DNA of 64,000 bases from Haliotis rufescens (Eukaryota): contig NW_025964024.1 in assembly GCF_023055435.1 (NCBI RefSeq), forward strand, positions 4,402,001 to 4,466,000. The letters are read 5' to 3'. Of the stretch, positions 1,375 through 61,705 are shown in pieces. A program made the position numbers and the translations under genes. Numbering within the stretch: the first letter of the stretch is position 1; every line of letters starts with the position of its first letter. The notes under the pieces are model-generated. The model made no database searches. It was given only the letters and a program-made list of their open reading frames with translations, and had not been told where the DNA came from.

Positions 1375-3755
1375 TATGTACATTATAGGGCACTAGATAT
1401 ATACATTATAGACAAGTAGATATATACATTGTAGGCACTAGATATACACATTATAGACCACTAGATATACACATTATAGACCACTAGATATATACATTGT
1501 AGGCCACTAGATATGCACATTGTAGGCACTAGATATACACATTGTAGGCACTAGATATACACATTGTAGGCACTAGATATACACATTGTAGGCACTATAT
1601 ATACACATTGTAGGCACAAGATATACACATTGTAGGCACTAGATATATACATTGTAGGCACTAGATATACACATTGTAGCACTAGATATGCACATTGTAG
1701 GCACTAGATATATACATTGTAGGCACTAGATATACACATTGTAGGCACTAGATATACACATTGTAGGCACTAGATATACACATTGTAGGCACTAGATATA
1801 CACATTGTAGCACTAGATACACATTGTAGGCACTAGATATACACATTGTAGCACTAGATATGCACATTGTAGGCACTAGGTACACACATTGTAGACACTA
1901 GATATACACATTGTAGGCACTAGATACACATTGTAGGCACTAGATATACACATTGTAGCACTAGATATACACATTGTAGGCACTAGATACACACATTATA
2001 GACCACTAGATATACACATTGTAGGCACTAGGTACACACATTGTAGACACTAGATATACACATTGTAGGCACTAGGTATACACATTGTAGGCACTAGATA
2101 CACATTGTAGGCACTAGGTATACACATTGTAGACACTAGATATACACATTGTAGGCACTAGATACACACATTATAGACCACTAGATATACACATTGTAGG
2201 CACTAGGTACACACATTGTAGACACTAGATATACACATTGTAGGCACTAGGTATACACATTGTAGGCACTAGATACACATTGTAGGCACTAGGTACACAC
2301 ATTGTAGACACTAGATATACACATTGTAGGCACTAGATACACATTGTAGACACTAGATATACACATTGTAGGCACTAGATACACATTGTAGGCACTAGAT
2401 ATACACATTGTAGGCACTAGATACACATTGTAGGCACTAGGTATACACATTGTAGGCACTAGATACACATTGTAGGCACTAGATACACATTGTAGGCACT
2501 AGATATACACATTGTAGCACTAGATACACATTGTAGGCACTAGATATACACATTGTAGGCACTAGATACACATTGTTGGCACTAGATATACACATTGTAG
2601 ACACTAGATATACACATTGTAGGCACTAGATATACACATTGTAGGCACTATATGTACACATTGTAGGCACTAGATATACACATTGTAGGCACTACATATA
2701 CACATTGTAGGCACTAGATACACACATTGTAGGCACTAGATATACACATTGTAGGCTACTAGATGTTCACAGTATATACCACTAGATATACACATAGACC
2801 ACTAGATATATACATTGTAGGCCACTAGATATGCACATTGTAGGCACTAGATACACACATTGTAGGCACTAGATACACATTGTTGGCACTAGATATACAC
2901 ATTGTAGACACTAGATATACACATTGTAGGCACTAGATATACACATTGTAGGCACTATATGTACACATTGTAGGCACTAGATATACACATTGTAGGCACT
3001 ACATATACACATTGTAGGCACTAGATACACACATTGTAGGCACTAGATATACACATTGTAGGCTACTAGATGTTCACAGTATATACCACTAGATATACAC
3101 ATAGACCACTAGATATATACATTGTAGGCCACTAGATATGCACATTGTAGGCACTAGATACACACATTGTAGGCACTAGATACACATTGTTGGCACTAGA
3201 TATACACATTGTAGACACTAGATATACACATTGTAGGCACTAGATATACACATTGTAGGCACTATATGTACACATTGTAGGCACTAGATATACACATTGT
3301 AGGCACTACATATACACATTGTAGGCACTAGATACACACATTGTAGGCACTAGATATACACATTGTAGGCTACTAGATATTCACAGTATATACCACTAGA
3401 TATACACATAGACCACTAGATATATACATTGTAGGCCACTAGATATGCACATTGTAGGCACTAGATACACACATTGTAGGCACTATATATACACATTGTA
3501 GGCACTAGATAAACACATTGTATACCACTAGATACACACATTATAGACCGCTAGATATACACGTTATAGACCACAAGATATACACATTGTAGGCCACTAG
3601 ATATATACATTGTAGGCTCTAGGTACACACATTGTAGGCAATAGATATACACATTGTAGGCACTAGATATGCACAATGTAGGCACAAGAAATAGACATTG
3701 TAGGCACTAGATATACACATTGTAGACACAAGATATACACATTGTAGGCCACTAG
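1375..3755. repeat. 22-bp minisatellite (cactagatatacacattgtagg)n with a 307-bp higher-order repeat
   Basis: About 105 units. The variant agat(g/a)ttcacagtata recurs at 2761, 3068 and 3375. Confidence 0.97.
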
Positions 3756-4796
3756 TTATCTGGAAAACAAACCATTGTTAAGGAGTAATGTCCTTTGTAT
3801 ATATGTAGACCTTTATGACAAGAATTGCCAAAAATGCAAGATTTCCAGACAAACAGGTTTTCCTCATGTTGAAATTCCACTTAACAGGATTGTACTCTTT
3901 GTATTTTAATCCATCTCTTCTGGACTGAAGGCCCAGCAGAACTTGTATAGTGTGCATTGCCTGTCGTTATCTCAGTGTTATGCAGCCCCATGTAAAGGGG
4001 GATGTTAACAGGTTTTGTCAGAATTTGGCCCCTGATGCTGCACTGGATCTCTGTTGTGAAAACTTGAAGTGCATGTAATCAACTTGAGTAATCAATCATT
4101 CCAGAAGTGTTGTGTTTAAATGAATTTGTTTTCAAAACATTTATCTGTCAGGTCAGGTCAAGGTCAAGTAGGTCAGTGAAACTTGTTTGTGTCATCCTTG
4201 GGACATAGCTGCTATCTGAAAAGGTAGTGAGTGACCTTAATGGTCAAGGTCACACTGAAGGTCTTTTATAAATATTTGGGTTTTTTTCACTAAAATACCT
4301 TTTCCAGAATGTAGTAGTTATATTATTGAAATACTTATGATGGCAAGTGATGACAGTCTTACGATGTCAGTACCAGGTCACCGTGACCTACTTTCTATGA
4401 TTAGAATGTGCTTGAGGTTTAGGAAGTACCGATACTTGCAAACAGTTTTCTAGCTGTCTTCACAATGTTTTGCTCACATAAATCTGGCTCATAACAGGCC
4501 ACCATGACAATCACCTAACCCATTCATGTACCGGTACTCTTCACAATATTTTACTCACATCAGTCTGGGTCAGACCGTGCCACACTGTCCATGAACTGTC
4601 CCTTCGTCAATTATCAAAAGGTCTTAAACTTTGCAAGGATAATTCAAGCAAATGTGTCTTTAAAAACGATTTTAATTGTGGTCATACTGTAGGTTTCATT
4701 TTGTTATATATGCAGTTTTTGTATTCTTTTCAAGTTTGATACATGGGAAGTATTTGATAAATGGATGAGTTGTAGATTCTGATGCATGATCGTTAT

Positions 4797-4961: not shown

Positions 4962-5397
4962 AAACTTTCTGAATAAGAAATACCTTCATTCAAAGTCTAG
5001 TTTGGTTTCCATTGTAGCCACTTTCAAAATACATGAGTAACTGTTTTTGCACAGAATGTTAAAGTTTGGTACAGGGTAGTATGCCATTGCTTTGATGTTA
5101 TTAAGTTTTACTTACCAATACCTTTGTCATCCCTATCATAGAAATTTATTTGAAGCCAGGTGAGCTACAGAGCCAGGGTTATGTTTTCAAAAGGCAACAA
5201 GTTTTTTACTTGTTCTTCGGATTCCCCACCTCAGTCTTTAGATGTAAGAATTTGTATTTGGCATAAACTAAACAGTGTTGTACTGTACTGTAACCAAACA
5301 TTTTGAATATATAACATCAACTACAGAGAATAACCAGTCTTTATTATCTGTCGAAACAGATTCCATTGGGCGTAAAAGGCAAAATAGAGGTGAAAAT

Positions 5398-5640
5398 TCC
5401 ATGCTTGCCCATGCTTGCTGTAACAGGCGACTATGCTTGTCGTAAGAGGCGACTAACGGGATCGGGTGGTCAGACTCGCTGACTTGGTTGATGCATGTCA
5501 TCGTATCCCAATTGATTGATGCTCATGATGTCAAACACTGGATTGTCTGGTCCAGACTTGATTACTTACAGACCGCCGTCATATAGTTGGAATATTGCTG
5601 AGTGCGGCTAAAACAACAAACAAACAAACAAAACAAAACA
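5398..5640 (+). mobile_element. Family A, 5'-truncated
   Basis: Matches the consensus from ccatgcttg through the (caaa)n tail. Confidence 0.8.
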
Positions 5641-5876
5641 TTCTTTCCTTGAAATGTTGAAGCAAAAGCTCAACCGTTTGAAAATTCAGTTAACAGTTCA
5701 TTAGTATTCTTCCATTTGCGATGATAAACTTTTGAAATTAATTAAAATTAAAACATGTTATTGGGTTCAGAGATAAGAAAGAAAATAAGTTGCGTTCTAT
5801 CTCTACTGACAAAGCCCGAAGAACAAGTAATCAATTTGTCAATAATGATGTGTTTAAATGAAATTATTTGTTTCAG

Positions 5877-5966
5877 GAAATTAGCTGGCTGTTACTATTA
5901 CTACAATGCATTTATATGTGGAATACCTGCGTGCGCAGTGTCGTTACTGATAGAAAGAAAAGACAG
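5877..5966 (+). CDS. TMEM135: TMEM135 exon 3a, 90 nt, phase 2 to 2 (first of two paralogous exons)
   Basis: atttgtttcag acceptor and CAG|gtatca donor. Translates (R)KLAGCYYYYNAFICGIPACAVSLLIERKD(R), compared with recalled TMEM135 [31 protein letters not shown]. In frame with both flanking exons. Confidence 0.88.
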
Positions 5967-6023
5967 GTATCATACAATCATCTCATTCCATCGTACACCT
6001 GTAGCCAGGTCTAGTCTGTGTCA

Positions 6024-6400
6024 GCATCTGCCGCACAACGCACAGGGGGCACTCGTCGGGGGGGACACTGTACTTACCATGTCTGTGTTCACCTATATGA
6101 TTCTGATGGAAAGTAGTTATCGGAAGTGCAATGCGATCATGCTGCACTTTGAATAATTTATGTGCTAAAACATATGGCGACAATGATGATACATATATCT
6201 GGTTTCCGACATTGGATATAAGATGTTATACACAATGCACATGGGGTGTAAGAAGGTAATTATTTAATTAATAGAAAGCCTTAATTCATTTATTTTGGTG
6301 GAGACAAGTAAATAAAAAAAAACCAATTTCGTGTGACACATTAGTGTAGTGGGTGCTGCTCCTGTTGAAGTGCCCCCTGTCTGGGTTCTGTGCCGGATGT
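6024..6400 (+). promoter_or_regulatory. Putative intronic long-range RNA stem 1 between exons 3a and 3b
   Basis: Perfect 12-bp complement acagggggcact (6042-6053) / agtgccccctgt (6369-6380). Flanked in register by gcatctg/cggatgt, gcac/gtgc and cactgtact/agtgtagtg (G-U pairs allowed). Confidence 0.6.
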
Positions 6401-6417
6401 GTGTGTGTTGTGGCTTC

Positions 6418-6563
6418 TGACAACCAACCAACTTGCTGTTGTAACAGAGAGATTCAAAAGTTCATTATTTTCTTGCTACATCCCCACCACCAGCCTCTGA
6501 ACCCAATAATCACACTTTCTGGAGGTGACAGAGGTTGGGGTTTGTGCAGTTGGTTTGTTGTCA
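6418..6563 (+). promoter_or_regulatory. Putative intronic RNA stem 2 upstream of exon 3b
   Basis: tgacaaccaaccaact (6418-6433) / agttggtttgttgtca (6548-6563), 15 of 16 bp paired. Nested helix ccagcctctg (6490-6499) / cagaggttgg (6529-6538). Confidence 0.6.
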
Positions 6564-6644
6564 CTTCTATTCAGGAATGTCGCTTCACACGTTTTGATCT
6601 CTTTTTGTAATAGAAAACTTATTTTGTTTCTTTTGACTCTCCAG

Positions 6645-6734
6645 GAAAATCTCGGGCCGTTTTTATTTCAACTCCCCTTTTCTCTCGGCGTATTGTGGCG
6701 CCTTTGTAGCTATTCTACTGGAACGGAAATCCAG
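6645..6734 (+). CDS. TMEM135: TMEM135 exon 3b, 90 nt, phase 2 to 2 (second paralogous exon)
   Basis: ttttgtttcttttgactctccag acceptor and CAG|gtatag donor. Translates (R)KISGRFYFNSPFLSAYCGAFVAILLERKS(R). Same length and phase as 3a. Confidence 0.88.
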
Positions 6735-7224
6735 GTATAGTGAATGTTGAAATGTATAGAACACAGAAAACTGTCAATAATGTTACGCAAAGTACAAGTG
6801 TAACAAGATCAGTTAAGAAAATTAAAATCATACTCCAATTGTTGCAATTTATTATCAGCTTATGTAATGCTTACTTTTAGAATAGATTTAGTAATGTGCT
6901 TTTTTGAGAAGAGTGTGAGATATCAAAATTGCCATCAGCTACTGGAATTTAACATTTTATGACTTCTTGGCTTATTTTGTGCAAAATATTATAACAAGAA
7001 ACTACTAATCATGCTAATCTATTTGAGAGTTACACTGATCACAATTTATGTTGTTTTTTAAAATCCAACAAATGGTGTCAGGATTGTTCTATAAAGATGA
7101 CCAGGATTTTGTTGGCTTGTAAGGTTCATTGATCCAACAAAATGAGATGATAAGCAATACACCACAGCATGAAGCATTTTTTTCTTCACATTAATCATAA
7201 TGAAGTGGTAAATGAAATACCCAA

Positions 7225-7800
7225 CCCACCCGTCCACACCCCCATCAGCACCCCATCACCCAATCCCAAACCCCCGCCAGCACTCCCATCAGCACCCCTA
7301 CCCCCCATCCCCATCAGCATCCCTATCCCCCATCCCTATCCCCCATCCCCATCCCCATCCCTATCCCCCATCCCCATCCCCATCCCTATCCCCATCCCCA
7401 TCAGCATCCCTATCCCCCATCCCCATCCCCATCCCTATCCCCCATCCCCATCCCCATCCCTATCCCCCATCCCCATCCCCACCCCTACCCCCCATCCCCA
7501 TCCCCATCCCTATCCCCATCCCCATCAGCATCCCTATCCCCCATCCCCATCCCCCACCCCTACCCCCCATCCCCATCCCCATCCCTATCCCCATCCCCAT
7601 CCCCCATCCCCATCCCCCATCCCTATCCCCCATCCCCATCTCCATCAGCACCCCCCATCCCTATCCCCATCCCCATCCCCATCCCCACCCCCCATCCCTA
7701 TCCCCATCCGCATCCCCATCAGCAACCACAGCACCCCATTCCCCCAACCCCACTAGCACTCCCATCCCCCAACCCATCACCAGCACCCCAATCACCACCC
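7225..7800. repeat. (ccccat)n C-rich microsatellite
   Basis: Direct inspection. Confidence 0.95.
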
Positions 7801-8481: not shown

Positions 8482-9229
8482 TAACACTTTTCCTCCTGTT
8501 CACTTAACATTTGTAATCCTGGTCACAGCACAGTCAAGAGCACAGATCTTTGTTGAATAAATGGCTGTCCCTGGCAGATATAGGCTTTATTCAATGGGAC
8601 CAGTTATCATGTATTTCACTCTTTTTACTTAATCCTTCATTAATTACTTTTTTTCTTTATGACAATTTAAGCATGTATTTTCAAGATCTACATTTGATTA
8701 AAATGGCGCAGGATAATGGTTTGGTTTTATAACATGATTCGTTATATGTCTGTGTGTTTTGTTTCAATCTTGTCATATATACTGCTCAACTTTTGATAGG
8801 GATAATCAGATTTGTCAGATAGTTATGAATGGACACTGGATTTATAATCAGTTTTGTGTATCATGGAAAGATTAAAAATATCCCAGTCAAAAGTGGAGTA
8901 GTATCTGTTTTTGTCATAAGACAATTGATGGAATGTATCATTGATATTACATCATCTAGTGTTGGGGGTAGTGTTCCTTGTATACCTGCCACGGCATTCC
9001 AGCGCAAACCTCGGATTACTAGGAAAAGTGTTTCCGTGATTGCTTGGAGAGTGAGTGTGTGTTGATTGCAGAGATGTCAGAGGGTTTATGGAAGTAGGTG
9101 TAGCCAAGGTTAAATATACTGATTATTTGGGCATCAGACTTAGGTGCTCCCCCCCCTAACACATACCAACTACCCTGGTACCACACCCCATCTACCCCTA
9201 TAACATAACCTATTTATCGGGTGCTGCAC

Positions 9230-10900
9230 CCGATCCACCCTATGTTTCCTGATACCACACTCTATCCACCCCAGCTGAACACCCTGACCGTCCTGGCTCC
9301 ACATTCTATGTTTCCTGATACCACACTCTATCCACCCCAGCTGAACACCCTAACCATCCCGGCTCCACATTCTATGTTTCCTGATACCACACTCTATCCA
9401 CCCCAGCTGAACACCCTGACCGTCCTGGCTCCACATTCTATGTTTCCTGATACCACACTCTATCCACCCCAGCTGAACACCCCAACCATCCTGGCTCCAC
9501 ATTCTATGTTTCCTGATACCACACTCTCTCCACCCCAGCTGAACACCCTGACCGTCCTGGCTCCACATTCTATGTTTCCTGATACCACACTCTATCCACC
9601 CCAGCTGAACACCCTAACCATCCCGGCTCCACATTCTATGTTTCCTGATACCACACTCTATCCACCCCAGCTGAACACCCTGACCGTCCTGGCTCCACAT
9701 TCTATGTTTCCTGATACCACACTCTATCCACCCCAGCTGAACACCCTAACCATCCCGGCTCCACATTCTATGTTTCCTGATACCACACTCTCTCCACCCC
9801 AGCTGAACACCCTGACCGTCCTGGCTCCACATTCTATGTTTCCTGATACCACACTCTATCCACCCCAGCTGAACACCCTGACCGTCCTGGCTCCACATTC
9901 TATGTTTCCTGATACCACACTCTCTCCATCCCAGCTGAACACCCCAACCATCCCAGGTCCACACCCTATGTTTCCTGATACCACACTCTATCCACCCCAG
10001 CTGAACACCCTGACCATCCCGGCTCCACATCCTATGTTTCCTGATACCACACTCTCTCCATCCCAGCTGAACACCCCAACCATCCCAGGTCCACACCCTA
10101 TGTTTCCTGATACCACACTCTATCCACCCCAGCTGAACACCCTGACCATCCTGGCTCCACATTCTATGTTTCCTGATACCACACTCTATCCACCCCAGCT
10201 GAACACCCTGACCATCCTGGCTCCACATTCTATGTTTCCTGATACCACACTCTATCCACCCCAGCTGAACACCCTGACCATCCTGGCTCCACACCCTATG
10301 TTTCCAGATACCACACTCTATCCACCCCAGCTGAACACCCTGACCATCCCGGCTCCACACCCTATGTTTCCTGATACCACACTCTATCCACCCCAGCTGA
10401 ACACCCTAACCATCCCGGCTCCACATCCTATGTTTCCTGATACCGCACTCTATCCACACCAGCTGAACACCCCAACCATCCCGGCTCCACATCCTATGTT
10501 TCCTGATACCGCACTCTATCCACCCCAGCTGAACACCCCAACCATCCTGGCTCCACACCCTATGTTTCCAGATACCACACTCTATCCACCCCAGCTGAAC
10601 ACCCTGACCATCCTGGCTCCACACCCTATGTTTCCTGATACCACACTCTATCCACACCAGCTGAACACCCTAACCATCCCGGCTCCACACCCTATGTTTC
10701 CTGATACCACACTCTATCCACACCAGCTGAACACCCCAACCATCCCGGCTCCACACCCTATGTTTCCTGATACCACACTCTATCCACACCAGCTGAACAC
10801 CCCAACCATCCCGGCTCCACACCCTATGTTTCCTGATACCGCACTCTATCCACCCCAGCTGAACACCCTAACCATCCTGGCTCCACATTCTATCCACCTC
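9230..10900. repeat. 63-bp minisatellite, ~26 copies
   Basis: Unit tatgtttcctgataccacactctatccaccccagctgaacaccctgaccatcctggctccacatt/c. Confidence 0.97.
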
Positions 10901-11106
10901 TGTCCCACCCGGTACCACATCTATCTACCCAAGTGCCACACCCACAAGGTTACACTAATCCCCCATCATCATCAAAAGAAGCACATGTTGAACATGTTGC
11001 CATGCCTACCCATTTACCTGTCACACCCCAAGACCACACCCATTTAGCAGCTTATGATTCCCCAACATTTGCATTTGATAACCAAACATCCAGCTTTGGT
11101 TCTGTC

Positions 11107-32789: not shown

Positions 32790-33159
32790 TGTCTAATTTG
32801 TCATCTGTCAACTTTTAAGTGATGCCTATCAAACAATTAAGCCTTTCAAAGACTAAGGTTTGATTTCAAAAACTTTTTTCTGTCCTCAAAACATTTTTTA
32901 AAAAGAGGGCAAAGAAACATGCTTTTTGATTCCTCCAACTGTTTTTCAACAAATCTTTTACTGCAGTACTAGCAGATCAAAACAAGTCTCAGATGAAGTA
33001 ACTGTTTCTACTGTTTCACAGTAACAACTGTGTGTGGTAGGAATCTGATCAGGTTCAGTCAGGTCGCATTGCAGCCACTGAGGGGGTAATTCAGAAGACA
33101 CGGGAGATGTGAGGAGGGTGGTTACTGGTCGATGGTACCAGTGCCACAACCACAACACA

Positions 33160-35560
33160 GTGCTCTTCTTCCTCCTAGTACACTGCAACACCGCCCTCTT
33201 CTCCACCCAGTACAACACCGCCCTCTTCTCCACCCAGTACACTGCAACACCGCCCTCTTCTCCACCCAGTACACTACAACACCGCCCTCTTCTCCACCCA
33301 GTACACTGCAACACCGCCCTCTTCTCCACCCAGTACACTACAGCACCGCCCTCTTCTCCACCCATTACAACACCGCCCTCTTCTCCACGCAGTACACTGC
33401 AACACCGCCCTCTTCTCCACCCTTTACAACACCGCCCTCTTCTCCACCCAGTACACTGCAACACCACCCTCTTCTCCACCCAGTACAACACCGCCCACTT
33501 CTTCACCCAGTACACTGCAACACCGCCCTCTTCTCCACCCATTACAACACCGCCATCTTCTCCACCCAGTACACTGCAACACCACCCTCTTCTCCACCCA
33601 GTACAACACCGCCCACTTCTTCACCCAGTACACTGCAACACCGCCCACTTCTCCACCCTGTACACTTCAACACCGCCCACTTCCCCACGCAGTACACTAC
33701 AACACTACCCTCTTCTCCAACCAGTACAACACTGCCCTCTTCTCCACCCAGTACACTGCAACACTGCCCTCTTCTCCACCCAGTACAACACCGCCCACTT
33801 CCCCACGCAGTACACTACAACACTACCCTCTTCTCCACCCAGTACAACACCGCCCACTTCCCCACGCAGTACACTACAACACCGCCCTCTTCTCCACCCA
33901 GTACACTGCAACATTGCCCTCTTCTCCACCCAGTGTACTGCAACACTGCCCTCTTCTCCACCCAGTACGCTGCAACACCGCCCTCTTCCCCACCCAGTAC
34001 AACACCGCCCTCTTCTCCACCCAGTACAACACCGCCCTCTTCTCCACCCAGTACACTACAACACTGCCCTCTTCTCCACCCAGTACACTGCAACATTGCC
34101 CTCTTCTCCACCCAGTGTACTGCAACACTGCCCTCTTCTCCACCCAGTACACTGCAACACTGCCCTCTTCTCCACCCAGTACACTGCAACATTGCCCTCT
34201 TCTCCACCCAGTGTACTACAACACCGCCCTCTTCTCCACCCAGTACACTGCAACACTGCCCTCTTCTCCACCCAGTACACTACAACACTGCCCTCTTCTC
34301 CACCCAGTACACTGCAACATTGCCCTCTTCTCCACCCAGTGTACTACAACACTGCCCTCTTCTCCACCCAGTACACTACAACACCGCCCTCTTCTCCACC
34401 CAGTACACTACAACACCGCCCTCTTCTCCACCCAGTACACTGCAACATTGCCCTCTTCCCCACCCAGTACAACACCGCCCTCTTCTCCACCCAGTACACT
34501 GCAACACTGCCCTCTTCTCCACCCAGTACACTACAACACTGCCCTCTTCTCCACCCAGTACACTGCAACATTGCCCTCTTCTCCACCCAGTGTACTACAA
34601 CACTGCCCTCTTCTCCACCCAGTACACTGCAACATTGCCCTCTTCTCCACCCAGTGTACTGCAACACTGCCCTCTTCTCCACCCAGTACGCTGCAACACC
34701 GCCCTCTTCCCCACCCAGTACAACACCGCCCTCTTCTCCACCCAGTACACTGCAACATTGCCCTCTTCTCCACCCAGTACACTACAACACTGCCCTCTTC
34801 TCCACCCAGTACACTGCAACATTGCCCTCTTCTCCACCCAGTGTACTACAACACCGCCCTCTTCTCCACCCAGTACACTGCAACATTGCCCTCTTCTCCA
34901 CCCAGTGTACTGCAACACTGCCCTCTTCTCCACCCAGTACGCTGCAACACCGCCCTCTTCCCCACCCAGTACAACACCGCCCTCTTCTCCACCCAGTACA
35001 CTGCAACATTGCCCTCTTCTCCACCCAGTACACTACAACACTGCCCTCTTCTCCACCCAGTACACTACAACACTGCCCTCTTCTCCACCCAGTGTACTGC
35101 AACACTGCCCTCTTCTCCACCCAGTACGCTGCAACACCGCCCTCTTCCCCACCCAGTACAACACCGCCCTCTTCTCCACCCAGTACACTGCAACATTGCC
35201 CTCTTCTCCACCCAGTACACTACAACACTGCCCTCTTCTCCACCCAGTACACTGCAACATTGCCCTCTTCTCCACCCAGTGTACTGCAACACTGCCCTCT
35301 TCTCCACCCAGTACGCTGCAACACCGCCCTCTTCCCCACCCAGTTCAACACCGCCCTCTTCTCCACCCAGTACACTGCAACATTGCCCTCTTCTCCACCC
35401 AGTACACTACAACACTGCCCTCTTCTCCACCCAGTACACTACAACACTGCCCTCTTCTCCACCCAGTACACTACAACACCGCCCACTTCTCCACCCCAGT
35501 ACACTGCAACACCACACTCTTCTCCACCCAGTGCAACATCATGCTCTTTTCCCCCCTCCC
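33160..35560. repeat. 32/27-bp minisatellite (cacccagtacactgcaacactgccctcttctc)n
   Basis: Direct inspection. No stop codon in any + frame, which explains the long spurious ORFs. Confidence 0.97.
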
Positions 35561-36111
35561 AGTACAATGCTGCACTCAAGTTCTTCCCCCTTACCCCAAT
35601 ACCACAACACCACCCATGTTTTTCTACTCCCAAAACCACAATTCCTCACCACCCCCCTCAAACACTGCGCTCTTCTATCCCCCCAATACAACACTGCGCT
35701 CTTCTCCCCCCAATTACCACAACTCCACACTTTTCTCCCCCAAGGGATGGCAGCTACAGTCCTCCACATACCGCACCTTGTCGTGCTGTTGTGCTGATAC
35801 TCTCCCCTATAAAATTTAATTAGAATGAGACGAAACTAAAATCATTGCTTTAATGATGGGTTATTGATAAAATAAAAAAAAGTAGCTAATCTTCCTCCTC
35901 GTAAATCTGTCAAGTGAGCTGCAAATTATGTGGGAGTCATGATTTTCTCTTGTTACCGTGGGTACGGGAAGGGTTCGGGAAGGGTAATATTTCTGTGTGC
36001 TGATTGTTTCATGCAGGATTTAATTACATAAGATTGTAGGCTAAAGTAGCGTATTTAGGCTACGTCTTCATTGGGCATGTTCCATGCTGTTTGCCTTAGG
36101 TCCTGGGGCTA

Positions 36112-59379: not shown

Positions 59380-61705
59380 GGTGATATACCACTCTTTGGG
59401 TAGGAACAATAAGTGATATACCATCCTGTGTCTGAACAATAGGTGATATACCACTCTTTGGGTAGGAACAATAAGTGATATACCATCCTGTGTCTGAACA
59501 ATAGGTGATATACCACTCTTTGGGTAGGAACAATAAGTGATATACCATCCTGTGTCTGAACAATAGGTGATATACCACTCTTTGGGTAGGAACAATAAGT
59601 GATATACCATCCTGTGTCTGAACAATAGGTGATATACCACCCTGTGCGTCTAAACGATAGGTGACATACTACCCTGTGGGTCTGAACAATGCAGGTGACA
59701 TACCATCCTGTGTGTCTGAGCAATATTGGGGGGATATACCATCCTGTCAGTCTAAACAATAGGTCATATACCACCATGTGTGTCTGAACAATACAGGTGA
59801 TATACCACCATGTGTGTCTGAACAATACAGGTGATATACCACCATGTGGGTCTGAACAATAAGTGATATATCATCCTGTGTCTGAACAACAGGTGATATA
59901 CCATCCTGTGGGCCTGAAAAAATACAGGTGATATACAATCCTTTGTGTCTGAACAAAACAGGTGAGATACCACCGTGTGGGTCTGAACAATACAGGTGAT
60001 ATACCATCCTCTGGGTCTGAACAATACAGGTGATATACCACATGTAAATCTGAACAAAACAGGTGATATACCATCCTGTGGGTCTGATGAATACAGGTGA
60101 TATACCTCATGTACATCTGAACAAAACAGGTGATATACCACCATGTGTGTCTGAACAATACAGGTGATATCCTACCCTGTGGGTCTGAACAATACAGGTA
60201 ATATACCAGATGTTGGTCTGAACAATACAGGTGATATCCTACCCTGTGGGTCTGAACAATACAGGTAATATACCAGATGTTGGTCTGAACAATACAGGTG
60301 ATATACCAGATGTGGGTCTGAACAATACAGGTAATATACCAGATGTGGGTCTGAACAATACAGGTGATATACCAGATGTGGGTCTGAACAATACAGGTGA
60401 TATCCTACCCTGTGGGTCTGAACAATACAGGTGATATCCTACCCTGTGGGTCTGAACAATACAGGTGATATACACCATGTGGGTCTGAACAATACAGGTG
60501 ATATCCTACCATGTGGGTCTGAACAATACAGGTGATATACCATCCTTTGTGTCTGAACAATACAGGTGATATACCACATGTGGGTCTGAACAATACTGGT
60601 AATATCCTACCCTGTGGGTCTGAACAATACAGGTGATATCCTACCCTGTGGGTCTGAACAATACTGGTGATATCCTAAACCCTTGGGTCTGAACAATACA
60701 GGTGATATCCTACCCTGTGGGTCTGAACAATACTGGTGATATCCTACCCTGTGGATCTGAACAATACAGGTGTTATCCTACCCTGTGGGTCTGAACAATA
60801 CAGGTGATATATCATCCTGTGGGTCTGAACAATACAGGTGATATCCTACCCTGTGGGTCTGAACAATACAGGTGATATACCACATGTGTGTCTGAACAAT
60901 ACAGGTGATATATCATCCTGTGGGTCTGAACAATACAGGTGATATCCTACCCTGTGGATCTGAACAATACAGAGGGGCGGTCGGGTAGCCTAGTCGTTAA
61001 AGCGTTCGCTCGTTAGCCGAAGACCCGGGTTCGAATCCCGACATGGGTACAATGTGTGAAGCCCATTTCTGGTGTCCCCCCGCCGTGATATTGCTGGAAT
61101 ATGCTAAAAGCGGCGTAAAACCATACTCACTCACTCACTCACTGAACAATACAGGTGATATCCTACCCTGTGGGTCTGAACAATACAGGTGATATCCTAC
61201 CCTGTGGGTCTGAACAATACTGGTGATATCCTACCCTGTGGGTCTGAACAATACAGGTGATATCCTACCCTGTGGATCTGAACAATACAGGTGATATCCT
61301 ACCCTGTGGGTCTGAACAATACTGGTGATATCCTACCCTGTGGGTCTGAACAATACTGGTGATATCCTACCCTGTGGATCTGAACAATACAGGTGTTATC
61401 CTACCCTGTGGGTCTGAACAATACAGGTGATATATCATCCTGTGGGTCTGAACAATACTGGTGATATCCTACCCTGTGGGTCTGAACAATACTGGTGATA
61501 TCCTACCCTGTGGGTCTGAACAATACTGGTGATATCCTACCCTGTGGATCTGAACAATACAGGTGATATCCTACCCTGTGTATCTGAACAATACAGGTGA
61601 TATCCTACCCTGTGGGTCTGAACAATACAGGTGATATCCTACCCTGTGGGTCTGAACAATACTGCTGATATCCTACTCTGTGGGTCTGAACAATGCAGGT
61701 AATAT
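59380..61705. repeat. 31-34-bp minisatellite (tctgaacaatacaggtgatatcctaccctgtggg)n; 62-bp dimeric unit at the left end
   Basis: Direct inspection; interrupted by a SINE at 60973. Confidence 0.97.
60973..61141 (+). mobile_element. SINE family B inserted in the 34-bp satellite
   Basis: TSD ctgaacaatacag at 60960-60972 and 61142-61154. Confidence 0.9.

Follow-up and report, generated by a model that had tools for sequence, protein, structure and literature searches.

The TMEM135 exon pair and its intron

The window, by which we mean the whole 64-kb stretch of DNA analysed here, covers part of the TMEM135 gene of a mollusc. Exons 3a and 3b of this gene are tandem duplicates with equal phase and AG/GT boundaries (Table 1). 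Their translations are related 29-residue peptides, which share length and frame. Exon 3b matches the Pfam family PF15982 (TMEM135_C_rich) at positions 80-113 with an E-value of 2.6e-4, and it is also recovered when the genome is scanned for this family. In the same scan exon 1 falls about 6 kb before the window begins, and exon 2 lies at about 894-1021. Homologous-protein searches, done exon by exon for exon 1 and for the open frame surrounding exon 3a, give no matches, and phmmer with the 33-aa exon returns only two spurious repeat proteins and no TMEM135 relatives. A scan of the genome contig collection likewise gives no matches.

Table 1. Coordinates of the exon pair, the intron and the intronic elements, as positions in the window
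Feature	Position	Strand	Remarks
Exon 3a	5877-5966	+	90 nt, codons from 5878; divergent paralog of exon 3b
Intron 3a-3b	5967-6644	+	678 nt, against 545 nt in the ortholog
Closing helix, 5' half	5984-5989 (partner 6574-6579)	+	unsupported
Stem 1, 5' arm	6024-6077	+	G-rich, with runs of G5 and G7; core 6042-6053
Segment within the stem 1 loop, absent in the ortholog	6124-6251	+	128 nt; from anchored alignment
Stem 1, 3' arm	6344-6400	+	pyrimidine- and G/U-rich; core 6369-6380
Conserved island with the 5' arm of stem 2	6401-6445	+	core 6418-6436; 82% identity; pair probability ~1
Inner helix inside stem 2	6486-6541 (6490-6499/6529-6538)	+	predicted here, non-conserved
Stem 2, 3' arm	6546-6563	+	16/16 pairs reproduced in the ortholog fold
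Conserved 3' intron block	6548-6644	+	3' arm of stem 2, hairpin, candidate branch sites, pyrimidine tract, 3b acceptor
Exon 3b	6645-6734	+	90 nt; canonical TMEM135 form

Both exons are multiples of three, as had been pointed out before, and the reading frame is kept when 3a and 3b are both skipped or both included. The two exons share length and phase, and their frame and splice sites are preserved in two species, which agrees indirectly with a mutually exclusive pair. Incompatibility of U2- and U12-type splice sites was considered for this pair and rejected. The donors read GTATCATAC and GTATAGTGA, and no U12 donor (RTATCCTT) or branch (TCCTTRAY) motif is found near the exons.

Literature searches found no report that ties TMEM135 to such a duplicated exon pair and no mollusc example of RNA-structure control of duplicated exons. 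The original prediction, which proposed that pairing within the intron could enforce the exclusive use of the two exons, had suggested that a molluscan TMEM135 example would be new.

Two long open frames lie downstream of the exon pair, both on the plus strand, at 9221-11047 (608 aa) and 33109-35823 (904 aa). They may be genes of transposons that lie in introns of TMEM135. Positions 419-553 hold 135 N, either masked sequence or a gap.

Two stems in the intron and in an orthologous intron

Both stems of the original prediction, with the helix inside the second, are present in the intron. Stem 1, running from 6024 to 6400, has a perfect 12-bp core, which is found by a repeat search of the sequence. 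In the ensemble of the exon3a-intron-exon3b RNA the pair probability is ~1.0 for this core and 0.44 for the outer part of the stem. The whole stem 1 duplex has 47 pairs (24 G-C, 13 A-U, and 10 G.U) and an energy of -61.7 kcal/mol. Stem 2 (6418-6433/6548-6563) pairs at 15 of 16 positions with a probability of ~1.0, and its duplex energy is -24 to -26.5 kcal/mol. The 10-bp inner helix also has a pair probability of ~1.0. The two stems are thermodynamically dominant. The p values obtained when one arm is shuffled with its composition kept are 0.018 (stem 1), 0.0015 (stem 2), and 0.012 (inner helix). Shuffled stem 1 still averages -49 kcal/mol, indicating that much of its energy comes from composition.

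Folding statistics on the window sequence are less clear. Compared with dinucleotide-shuffled controls, the intron folds better than the average shuffle, as had been expected, but the difference is weak: z is about -1.6 over 360 shuffles, and 7% of these fold as well. The separate batches give z = -1.50 (16/200 shuffles as good) and z = -1.67 (9/160); a value of -2.83 comes from 20 shuffles only. For the sub-domains z is about -1.7 (stem 1) and about -1.5 (stem 2), within a range of -1.5 to -1.8. The custom shuffler used reproduces the reference shuffle means on both sub-domains. The antisense strand has a z of -2.84 and is no different from the sense strand. Judged from this sequence alone, the stems are only weakly more than chance.

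These numbers bear on an alternative in which the helices have no function at the RNA level. Stem 1 would then be the decaying relic of an inverted repeat that predates the species split and arose by a foldback/MITE-like insertion or a local inverted duplication. The arms of stem 2 would be conserved linearly, as splicing-factor sites and an extended 3' splice-site region, and their complementarity would be inherited from low-complexity (CAAC)n and (GUUG)n. We regard this alternative as quite possible, if somewhat short of probable. It is favoured by the modest fold z-scores (-1.5 to -1.8), which 5-8% of shuffles equal, and by the equal result for the antisense strand. A possible TGTGT direct repeat flanking stem 1 (6017-6021 and 6401-6408) also fits it.

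The window also contains several further strong inverted repeats, again as this alternative would have it. When inverted repeats are ranked over 2089 positions of the window, stem 1 comes about fourth or fifth. Comparable or stronger ones are found at about 57211, 32611, and 39091, counted irrespective of transposon origin, and they run against the remark that no comparable non-TE complementarity was noticed elsewhere in the window. Repeats stronger than stem 1 (-70 to -112 kcal/mol) are 57211-57300/57675-57700, 32611-32670/~32742, 53191/53310, and 11341/12016; the one at about 39091 is comparable to or above it. A Watson-Crick-only local alignment of the intron with its own reverse complement gives mostly AT-rich matches.

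The arms themselves are not repetitive. No sequence resembling them was found elsewhere in the 64-kb window, and they match none of its repeat families, as previously claimed. Intron and arms are single-copy in the 1.33-Gb genome (BLAST, a paired-core pattern, and 27-28-nt arm patterns). That no second copy of an arm exists in 1.33 Gb at up to three mismatches in 27-28 nt speaks against helices left over from a repeat. A MITE or foldback transposon was rejected as their origin on this copy number; very old diverged copies might escape such a search. Rfam covariance models, run on both strands of 5000-7600 with E up to 1, give no match.

A second species is more informative. PEAW01020359.1 is a metagenome contig of 2488 nt, found with a degenerate pattern for the end of exon 3b, and on its minus strand exons 3a and 3b are separated by an intron of 545 nt. 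Its best matches in the genome are at this locus (75-80% identity, reciprocal best match), which marks it as an ortholog of a related organism rather than a paralog. The exons are 94-96% identical (3a: 96%) with their frames preserved, and exon 3b of the ortholog has 93 nt, one codon more and in frame. Neutral intron sequence differs at 32-42% of aligned sites, or ~0.25 substitutions/site/lineage. The comparison covers these two species in an anchored pairwise alignment. Note that a column-shuffle null is unsuited to shared helices here, since the conserved blocks cluster.

Within the intron, identity is 82% in the island holding the 5' arm of stem 2 (6401-6445), 92% over 6548-6644, and 100% over 6600-6649, against 53-68% in flanking intron. 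The expectation that the arms are conserved in related species is thus borne out for stem 2. It fails for stem 1, the arms of which are at the neutral level (54% identity for the 5' arm and 68% for the 3' arm; p-distance 0.46 and 0.30 against 0.32-0.42 for neutral sites), although their pairing is kept. This neutral rate of divergence is what a decaying repeat would show.

Folded alone, the ortholog intron has a z of -2.45, and none of 100 shuffles is as good. There are 22 helices of at least 4 bp in the minimum free energy (MFE) fold of the window intron, and three recur at homologous columns of the ortholog fold, namely a 7-bp hairpin at 6510-6528 and the two stems. The retention of just stems 1 and 2 (2/22) counts against helices without function. 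Absent from the ortholog fold are the inner 10-bp helix, the closing pairs, and every local hairpin except 6510-6528. For the inner helix, 4 of 14 pairs are broken in the alignment and 0 of 13 are found in the ortholog's own fold. The independent reproduction of stems 1 and 2 supports the view that the intron structure has been retained by evolution. Folding of a single sequence could neither back nor dismiss the stems, and one orthologous intron did most of the work.

Stem 2 is the better conserved. In the ortholog's own fold it has a perfect 14 bp plus 3 pairs, with a probability of 0.98. Three substitutions separate the species, none of them part of a double compensatory change. C6425 is A in the ortholog, which turns the C.U mismatch of the window into an A-U pair; T6433 is A, absorbed by a one-base slip in the stem; and A6563 is T, which opens the terminal pair. 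Because double compensatory changes do not occur, structural and linear-sequence constraint are formally inseparable, and this too agrees with arms conserved linearly. Set against it is the estimated chance of a perfect 14-bp complement between islands of 45 and 97 nt, ~1e-5 to 1e-4. Two islands under purifying selection with a perfect 14-bp complement would be best explained by a functional helix.

The conserved block before exon 3b contains further elements. Candidate 3b branch sites at A6597 and A6621 are inferred from the sequence and from the AG at 6612-6613. A perfect 7-bp local hairpin, TTCTATT/AATAGAA (6566-6572/6609-6615), is invariant and appears in the two-species consensus fold. 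It lies in the fully conserved block just upstream of a candidate branch site.

Stem 1 is retained in a different manner. The homologous stem in the ortholog's own fold has 37 pairs with a mean probability of 0.89, and 24 of the 39 mappable pairs reappear at homologous columns. Complementarity of the homologous stretch goes beyond composition in both species (window z -3.2, 9/2000 shuffles; ortholog z -4.95, 0/2000). Of 40 pairs, the sequence-based alignment leaves 18 broken. There are two double changes in this alignment and about three in a structure-guided one, in which the register is ambiguous. A 1-nt register shift in the G-run reconciles stem 1 of both species and gives several G-C/G.U exchanges. 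A compensatory reading of stem 1 depends on that shift, which is fitted to the structure. When arms are swapped between species in an alignment-free manner, the cognate combination is better than the chimeric one by 10-13 kcal/mol, which is non-significant at a null sd of 11.

Neutral decay was simulated from a perfect ancestral hairpin. The observed energies are readily reached at 0.2 substitutions/site/lineage, and both this result and the swap test are compatible with a relic of an inverted repeat. At 0.3 per lineage, which is about the measured neutral divergence, both species would be this stable with only ~2% probability, and this weighs against such a relic. So does the wobble pairing. 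Stem 1 has 10 G.U and 1 A.C here (7 G.U in the ortholog), and at least 10 G.U with at most 1 A.C arise in just 0.1-0.9% of simulated neutral runs. The null for this excess of G.U over A.C is the simulation; control repeats from the window were picked on the plus strand and are equally biased. The comparison of the two sequences indicates that stem 1 is retained between species, possibly by selection.

The loop of stem 1 is evidently free to vary in content, judging from the segment missing in the ortholog. Two islands in this loop, 6100-6124 and 6252-6265, are conserved, and a 10-bp helix between them (6112-6121/6255-6264) is possible in both species. They flank the 128-nt indel exactly and are therefore adjacent in the ortholog.

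Donor-to-branch distance and competing partners

According to the original prediction, a folded intron would leave only about 40-60 nt between the 3a donor and the 3b branch region. U1 and U2 could then not assemble together, and 3a would never be joined to 3b. Some facts are in favour of such steric exclusion: the two stems are stable and retained, and both exons are in frame, so nonsense-mediated decay cannot police their co-inclusion. There are also precedents. For linear distances, steric hindrance is known to set in at about 50 nt (PMC7969005), and its combination with RNA structure is attributed to Dscam exon 17, as cited in PMC7969005 and PMC6071210.

The model requires a closing helix, cattcc/ggaatg, which encloses both stems. 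This helix (5984-5989/6574-6579) has a pair probability of 0.00, and it is not conserved, the ortholog reading CATTAT. In the MFE fold of the window, 6574-6580 pairs with 6413-6418 instead. The same orthologous intron that supports the stems thus weighs against the closing helix. If stems 1 and 2 are the only ones to form, an unpaired path of ~57 + 9 + 50 nt, or roughly 120 nt, remains between donor and branch.

The proximity itself turns out to be generic. As a graph distance, donor and branch are 57-58 apart in the MFE fold and about 30 in the ensemble, and the median of dinucleotide shuffles is 26-38. In 94-100% of shuffled introns donor and branch are as close or closer, so the argument would forbid the splicing of any intron. 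Close ends are a general property of folded RNA (Yoffe et al., PMC3017586), and the equally close ends of the shuffled introns match it. In introns of the steric class the donor-to-branch distance is below about 50 nt. Here the AG at 6612-6613 implies a conventional branch near the acceptor, at a linear distance of about 630-655 nt from the donor to the candidate branch sites read from the sequence. In yeast and other systems, moreover, a shortening of the donor-to-branch distance by intron stems promotes splicing and does not prevent it. Structure-induced steric exclusion is therefore not supported by the modelled folds, and we consider it very unlikely.

Another possibility is competition as known from arthropods, in which two selectors, one near 3a and one near 3b, would vie for a single arm, such as the 3' arm of stem 2. 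Whichever selector it pairs with would decide which exon is used. The ortholog has a second copy of a 9-mer, ACAACAAAC, ~150 nt upstream of exon 3a, complementary to this 3' arm, and such an arrangement of selectors is predicted by the duplication model of Ivanov and Pervouchine (PMC6071210). The upstream copy, on the minus strand of PEAW01020359.1, is identical to part of the 5' arm of stem 2. In the window, however, the site (5721-5730) has degenerated to a G.U-rich 10-mer, ATGATAAACT, which pairs through G.U only. The upstream site could be a lost or lineage-specific selector.

Energies do not favour competition either. The best upstream partner of the 3' arm reaches -13.6 kcal/mol, against -24.3 for the cognate arm, and a 20-kb scan gives no third partner above GC-rich background for any arm. 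The only strong alternative lies in the segment that the ortholog lacks. This is 6121-6146, which pairs with the 3' arm of stem 2 at -28.0 kcal/mol against -24.3 for the cognate and is disfavoured in the ensemble. The docking/selector layout thus appears to be absent from the sequence, with no competing third arm, and we give this model very little weight.

A proposed role for the stems and their place among known systems

The reading that we prefer is that of two retained helices. Stem 2 would most likely be a functional pair of conserved complementary regions, perhaps assisted by stem 1, and the use of 3b relative to 3a would be tuned by them, by neither steric exclusion nor docking and selection. 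We put its probability at roughly 0.45. Stem 2 would join the upstream island 6401-6445 to the ~100 strongly conserved nt before exon 3b and loop out about 114 nt. It may thereby mask or juxtapose intronic splicing signals beside the branch/acceptor region of 3b and so tune how readily 3b, as compared with 3a, is spliced in. For stem 2, acting as a bridge or a mask beside this block seems the most plausible role. With stem 1 formed, the variable centre of the intron (265 nt in the window and about 120 nt in the ortholog) would be looped out, and two conserved G-runs located 78-97 nt past the 3a donor would be sequestered. Stem 1 may contribute to the tuning, or it may be what is left of an old inverted repeat in the course of decay. 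That the stems affect splicing at all, and in which direction, we infer.

A stronger version is that the retained stems prevent the joining of 3a to 3b. The compacted intron would make donor and acceptor mutually unusable, or would link the silencing of one exon to the activation of its partner. This seems unlikely to us. If true, it would be structure-enforced mutual exclusivity in a lophotrochozoan, with an origin separate from that in arthropods and vertebrates and with no docking/selector layout.

Control of duplicated exons by RNA structure is known from Dscam1, 14-3-3zeta, and Mhc of arthropods (PMC6071210, PMC12962786). The original prediction mentioned arthropod genes of this kind, which is too narrow, since mammalian cases are known in ATE1 (R1-R5; PMC7797038) and the SCN genes (PMC12772994). 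The TMEM135 intron resembles Dscam1, 14-3-3zeta, Mhc, and ATE1 in having long-range intronic pairing with tandemly duplicated and probably mutually exclusive exons. Unlike them, it has no second selector that competes for a shared docking site, and both of its helices are closed inside one intron, so that no exon is looped out.

A close likeness is to the structural RNA bridge between ISRE1 and ISRE2 at exons 5a/5b of SCN-alpha (PMC12772994). In both cases two conserved intronic elements beside one duplicated exon are complementary over ~15 bp, and the exon pair is in frame, so that mRNA decay cannot enforce the choice. The energy of stem 2 (-24 to -26.5 kcal/mol) is in the range of the validated SCN conserved complementary pairs, -17 to -23.6 kcal/mol (PMC12772994). 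Complementary motifs are also attributed to FGFR1/FGFR2, as cited in PMC12772994. The two systems differ in placement, as the TMEM135 elements lie upstream of the second exon, in the intron between the pair, while those of SCN lie downstream. An Rbfox-type site, proximity ligation, and mutational support belong to the SCN side, while the TMEM135 stems are known from the sequences of two species. The hosts are a mollusc and vertebrates, respectively.

Regions of this class have arms conserved above the neutral level, which is found for stem 2 and not for stem 1. Pairing is retained at homologous positions for both, in one other species (16/16 pairs of stem 2 and 24/39 of stem 1). The TMEM135 stems are a plausible addition to the known class of conserved complementary intronic regions, as far as sequence can tell. 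A mollusc case would show that the RNA-structure strategy recurs across bilaterians. The locus also offers a compact test system of ~860 nt, with two exons, one intron, and two stems.

Exons 2 and 3 of alpha-tropomyosin are kept exclusive by steric hindrance. Steric enforcement also acts on exons 4a/4b of OGDH, by a short donor-to-branch distance with distant branch points (PMC7969005). As at TMEM135, these are adjacent paralogous exons whose direct joining must be avoided. In their introns the donor and the branch are less than about 50 nt apart in linear terms, and no AG occurs from there to the acceptor, whereas the TMEM135 intron is 678 nt long and has many AGs and a conventional branch region near the acceptor. 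Intron "zipper" stems of yeast and fly shorten the effective distance from donor to branch and promote removal of the intron. The stable TMEM135 stems resemble them in looping out the middle of the intron; the effect of zipper stems, intron removal, is the opposite of what exclusivity needs.

The intron upstream of exon 3a contains a tandem array with units of ~150-160 nt at 1468-3758 (4403468-4405758). It matches the last 170 nt of PEAW01020359.1 at 72-76% identity, indicating a repeat family that is common to both species and occupies different places in the gene. On the minus strand of that contig, a stretch of ~75 nt (984-1059) that lies upstream of exon 3a matches short-period satellite arrays on many genome contigs at 78-91% identity. 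Another long array, at 60167-61668 of the window, has a unit of ~34 nt that contains GATATCCTACCCTGTGG.
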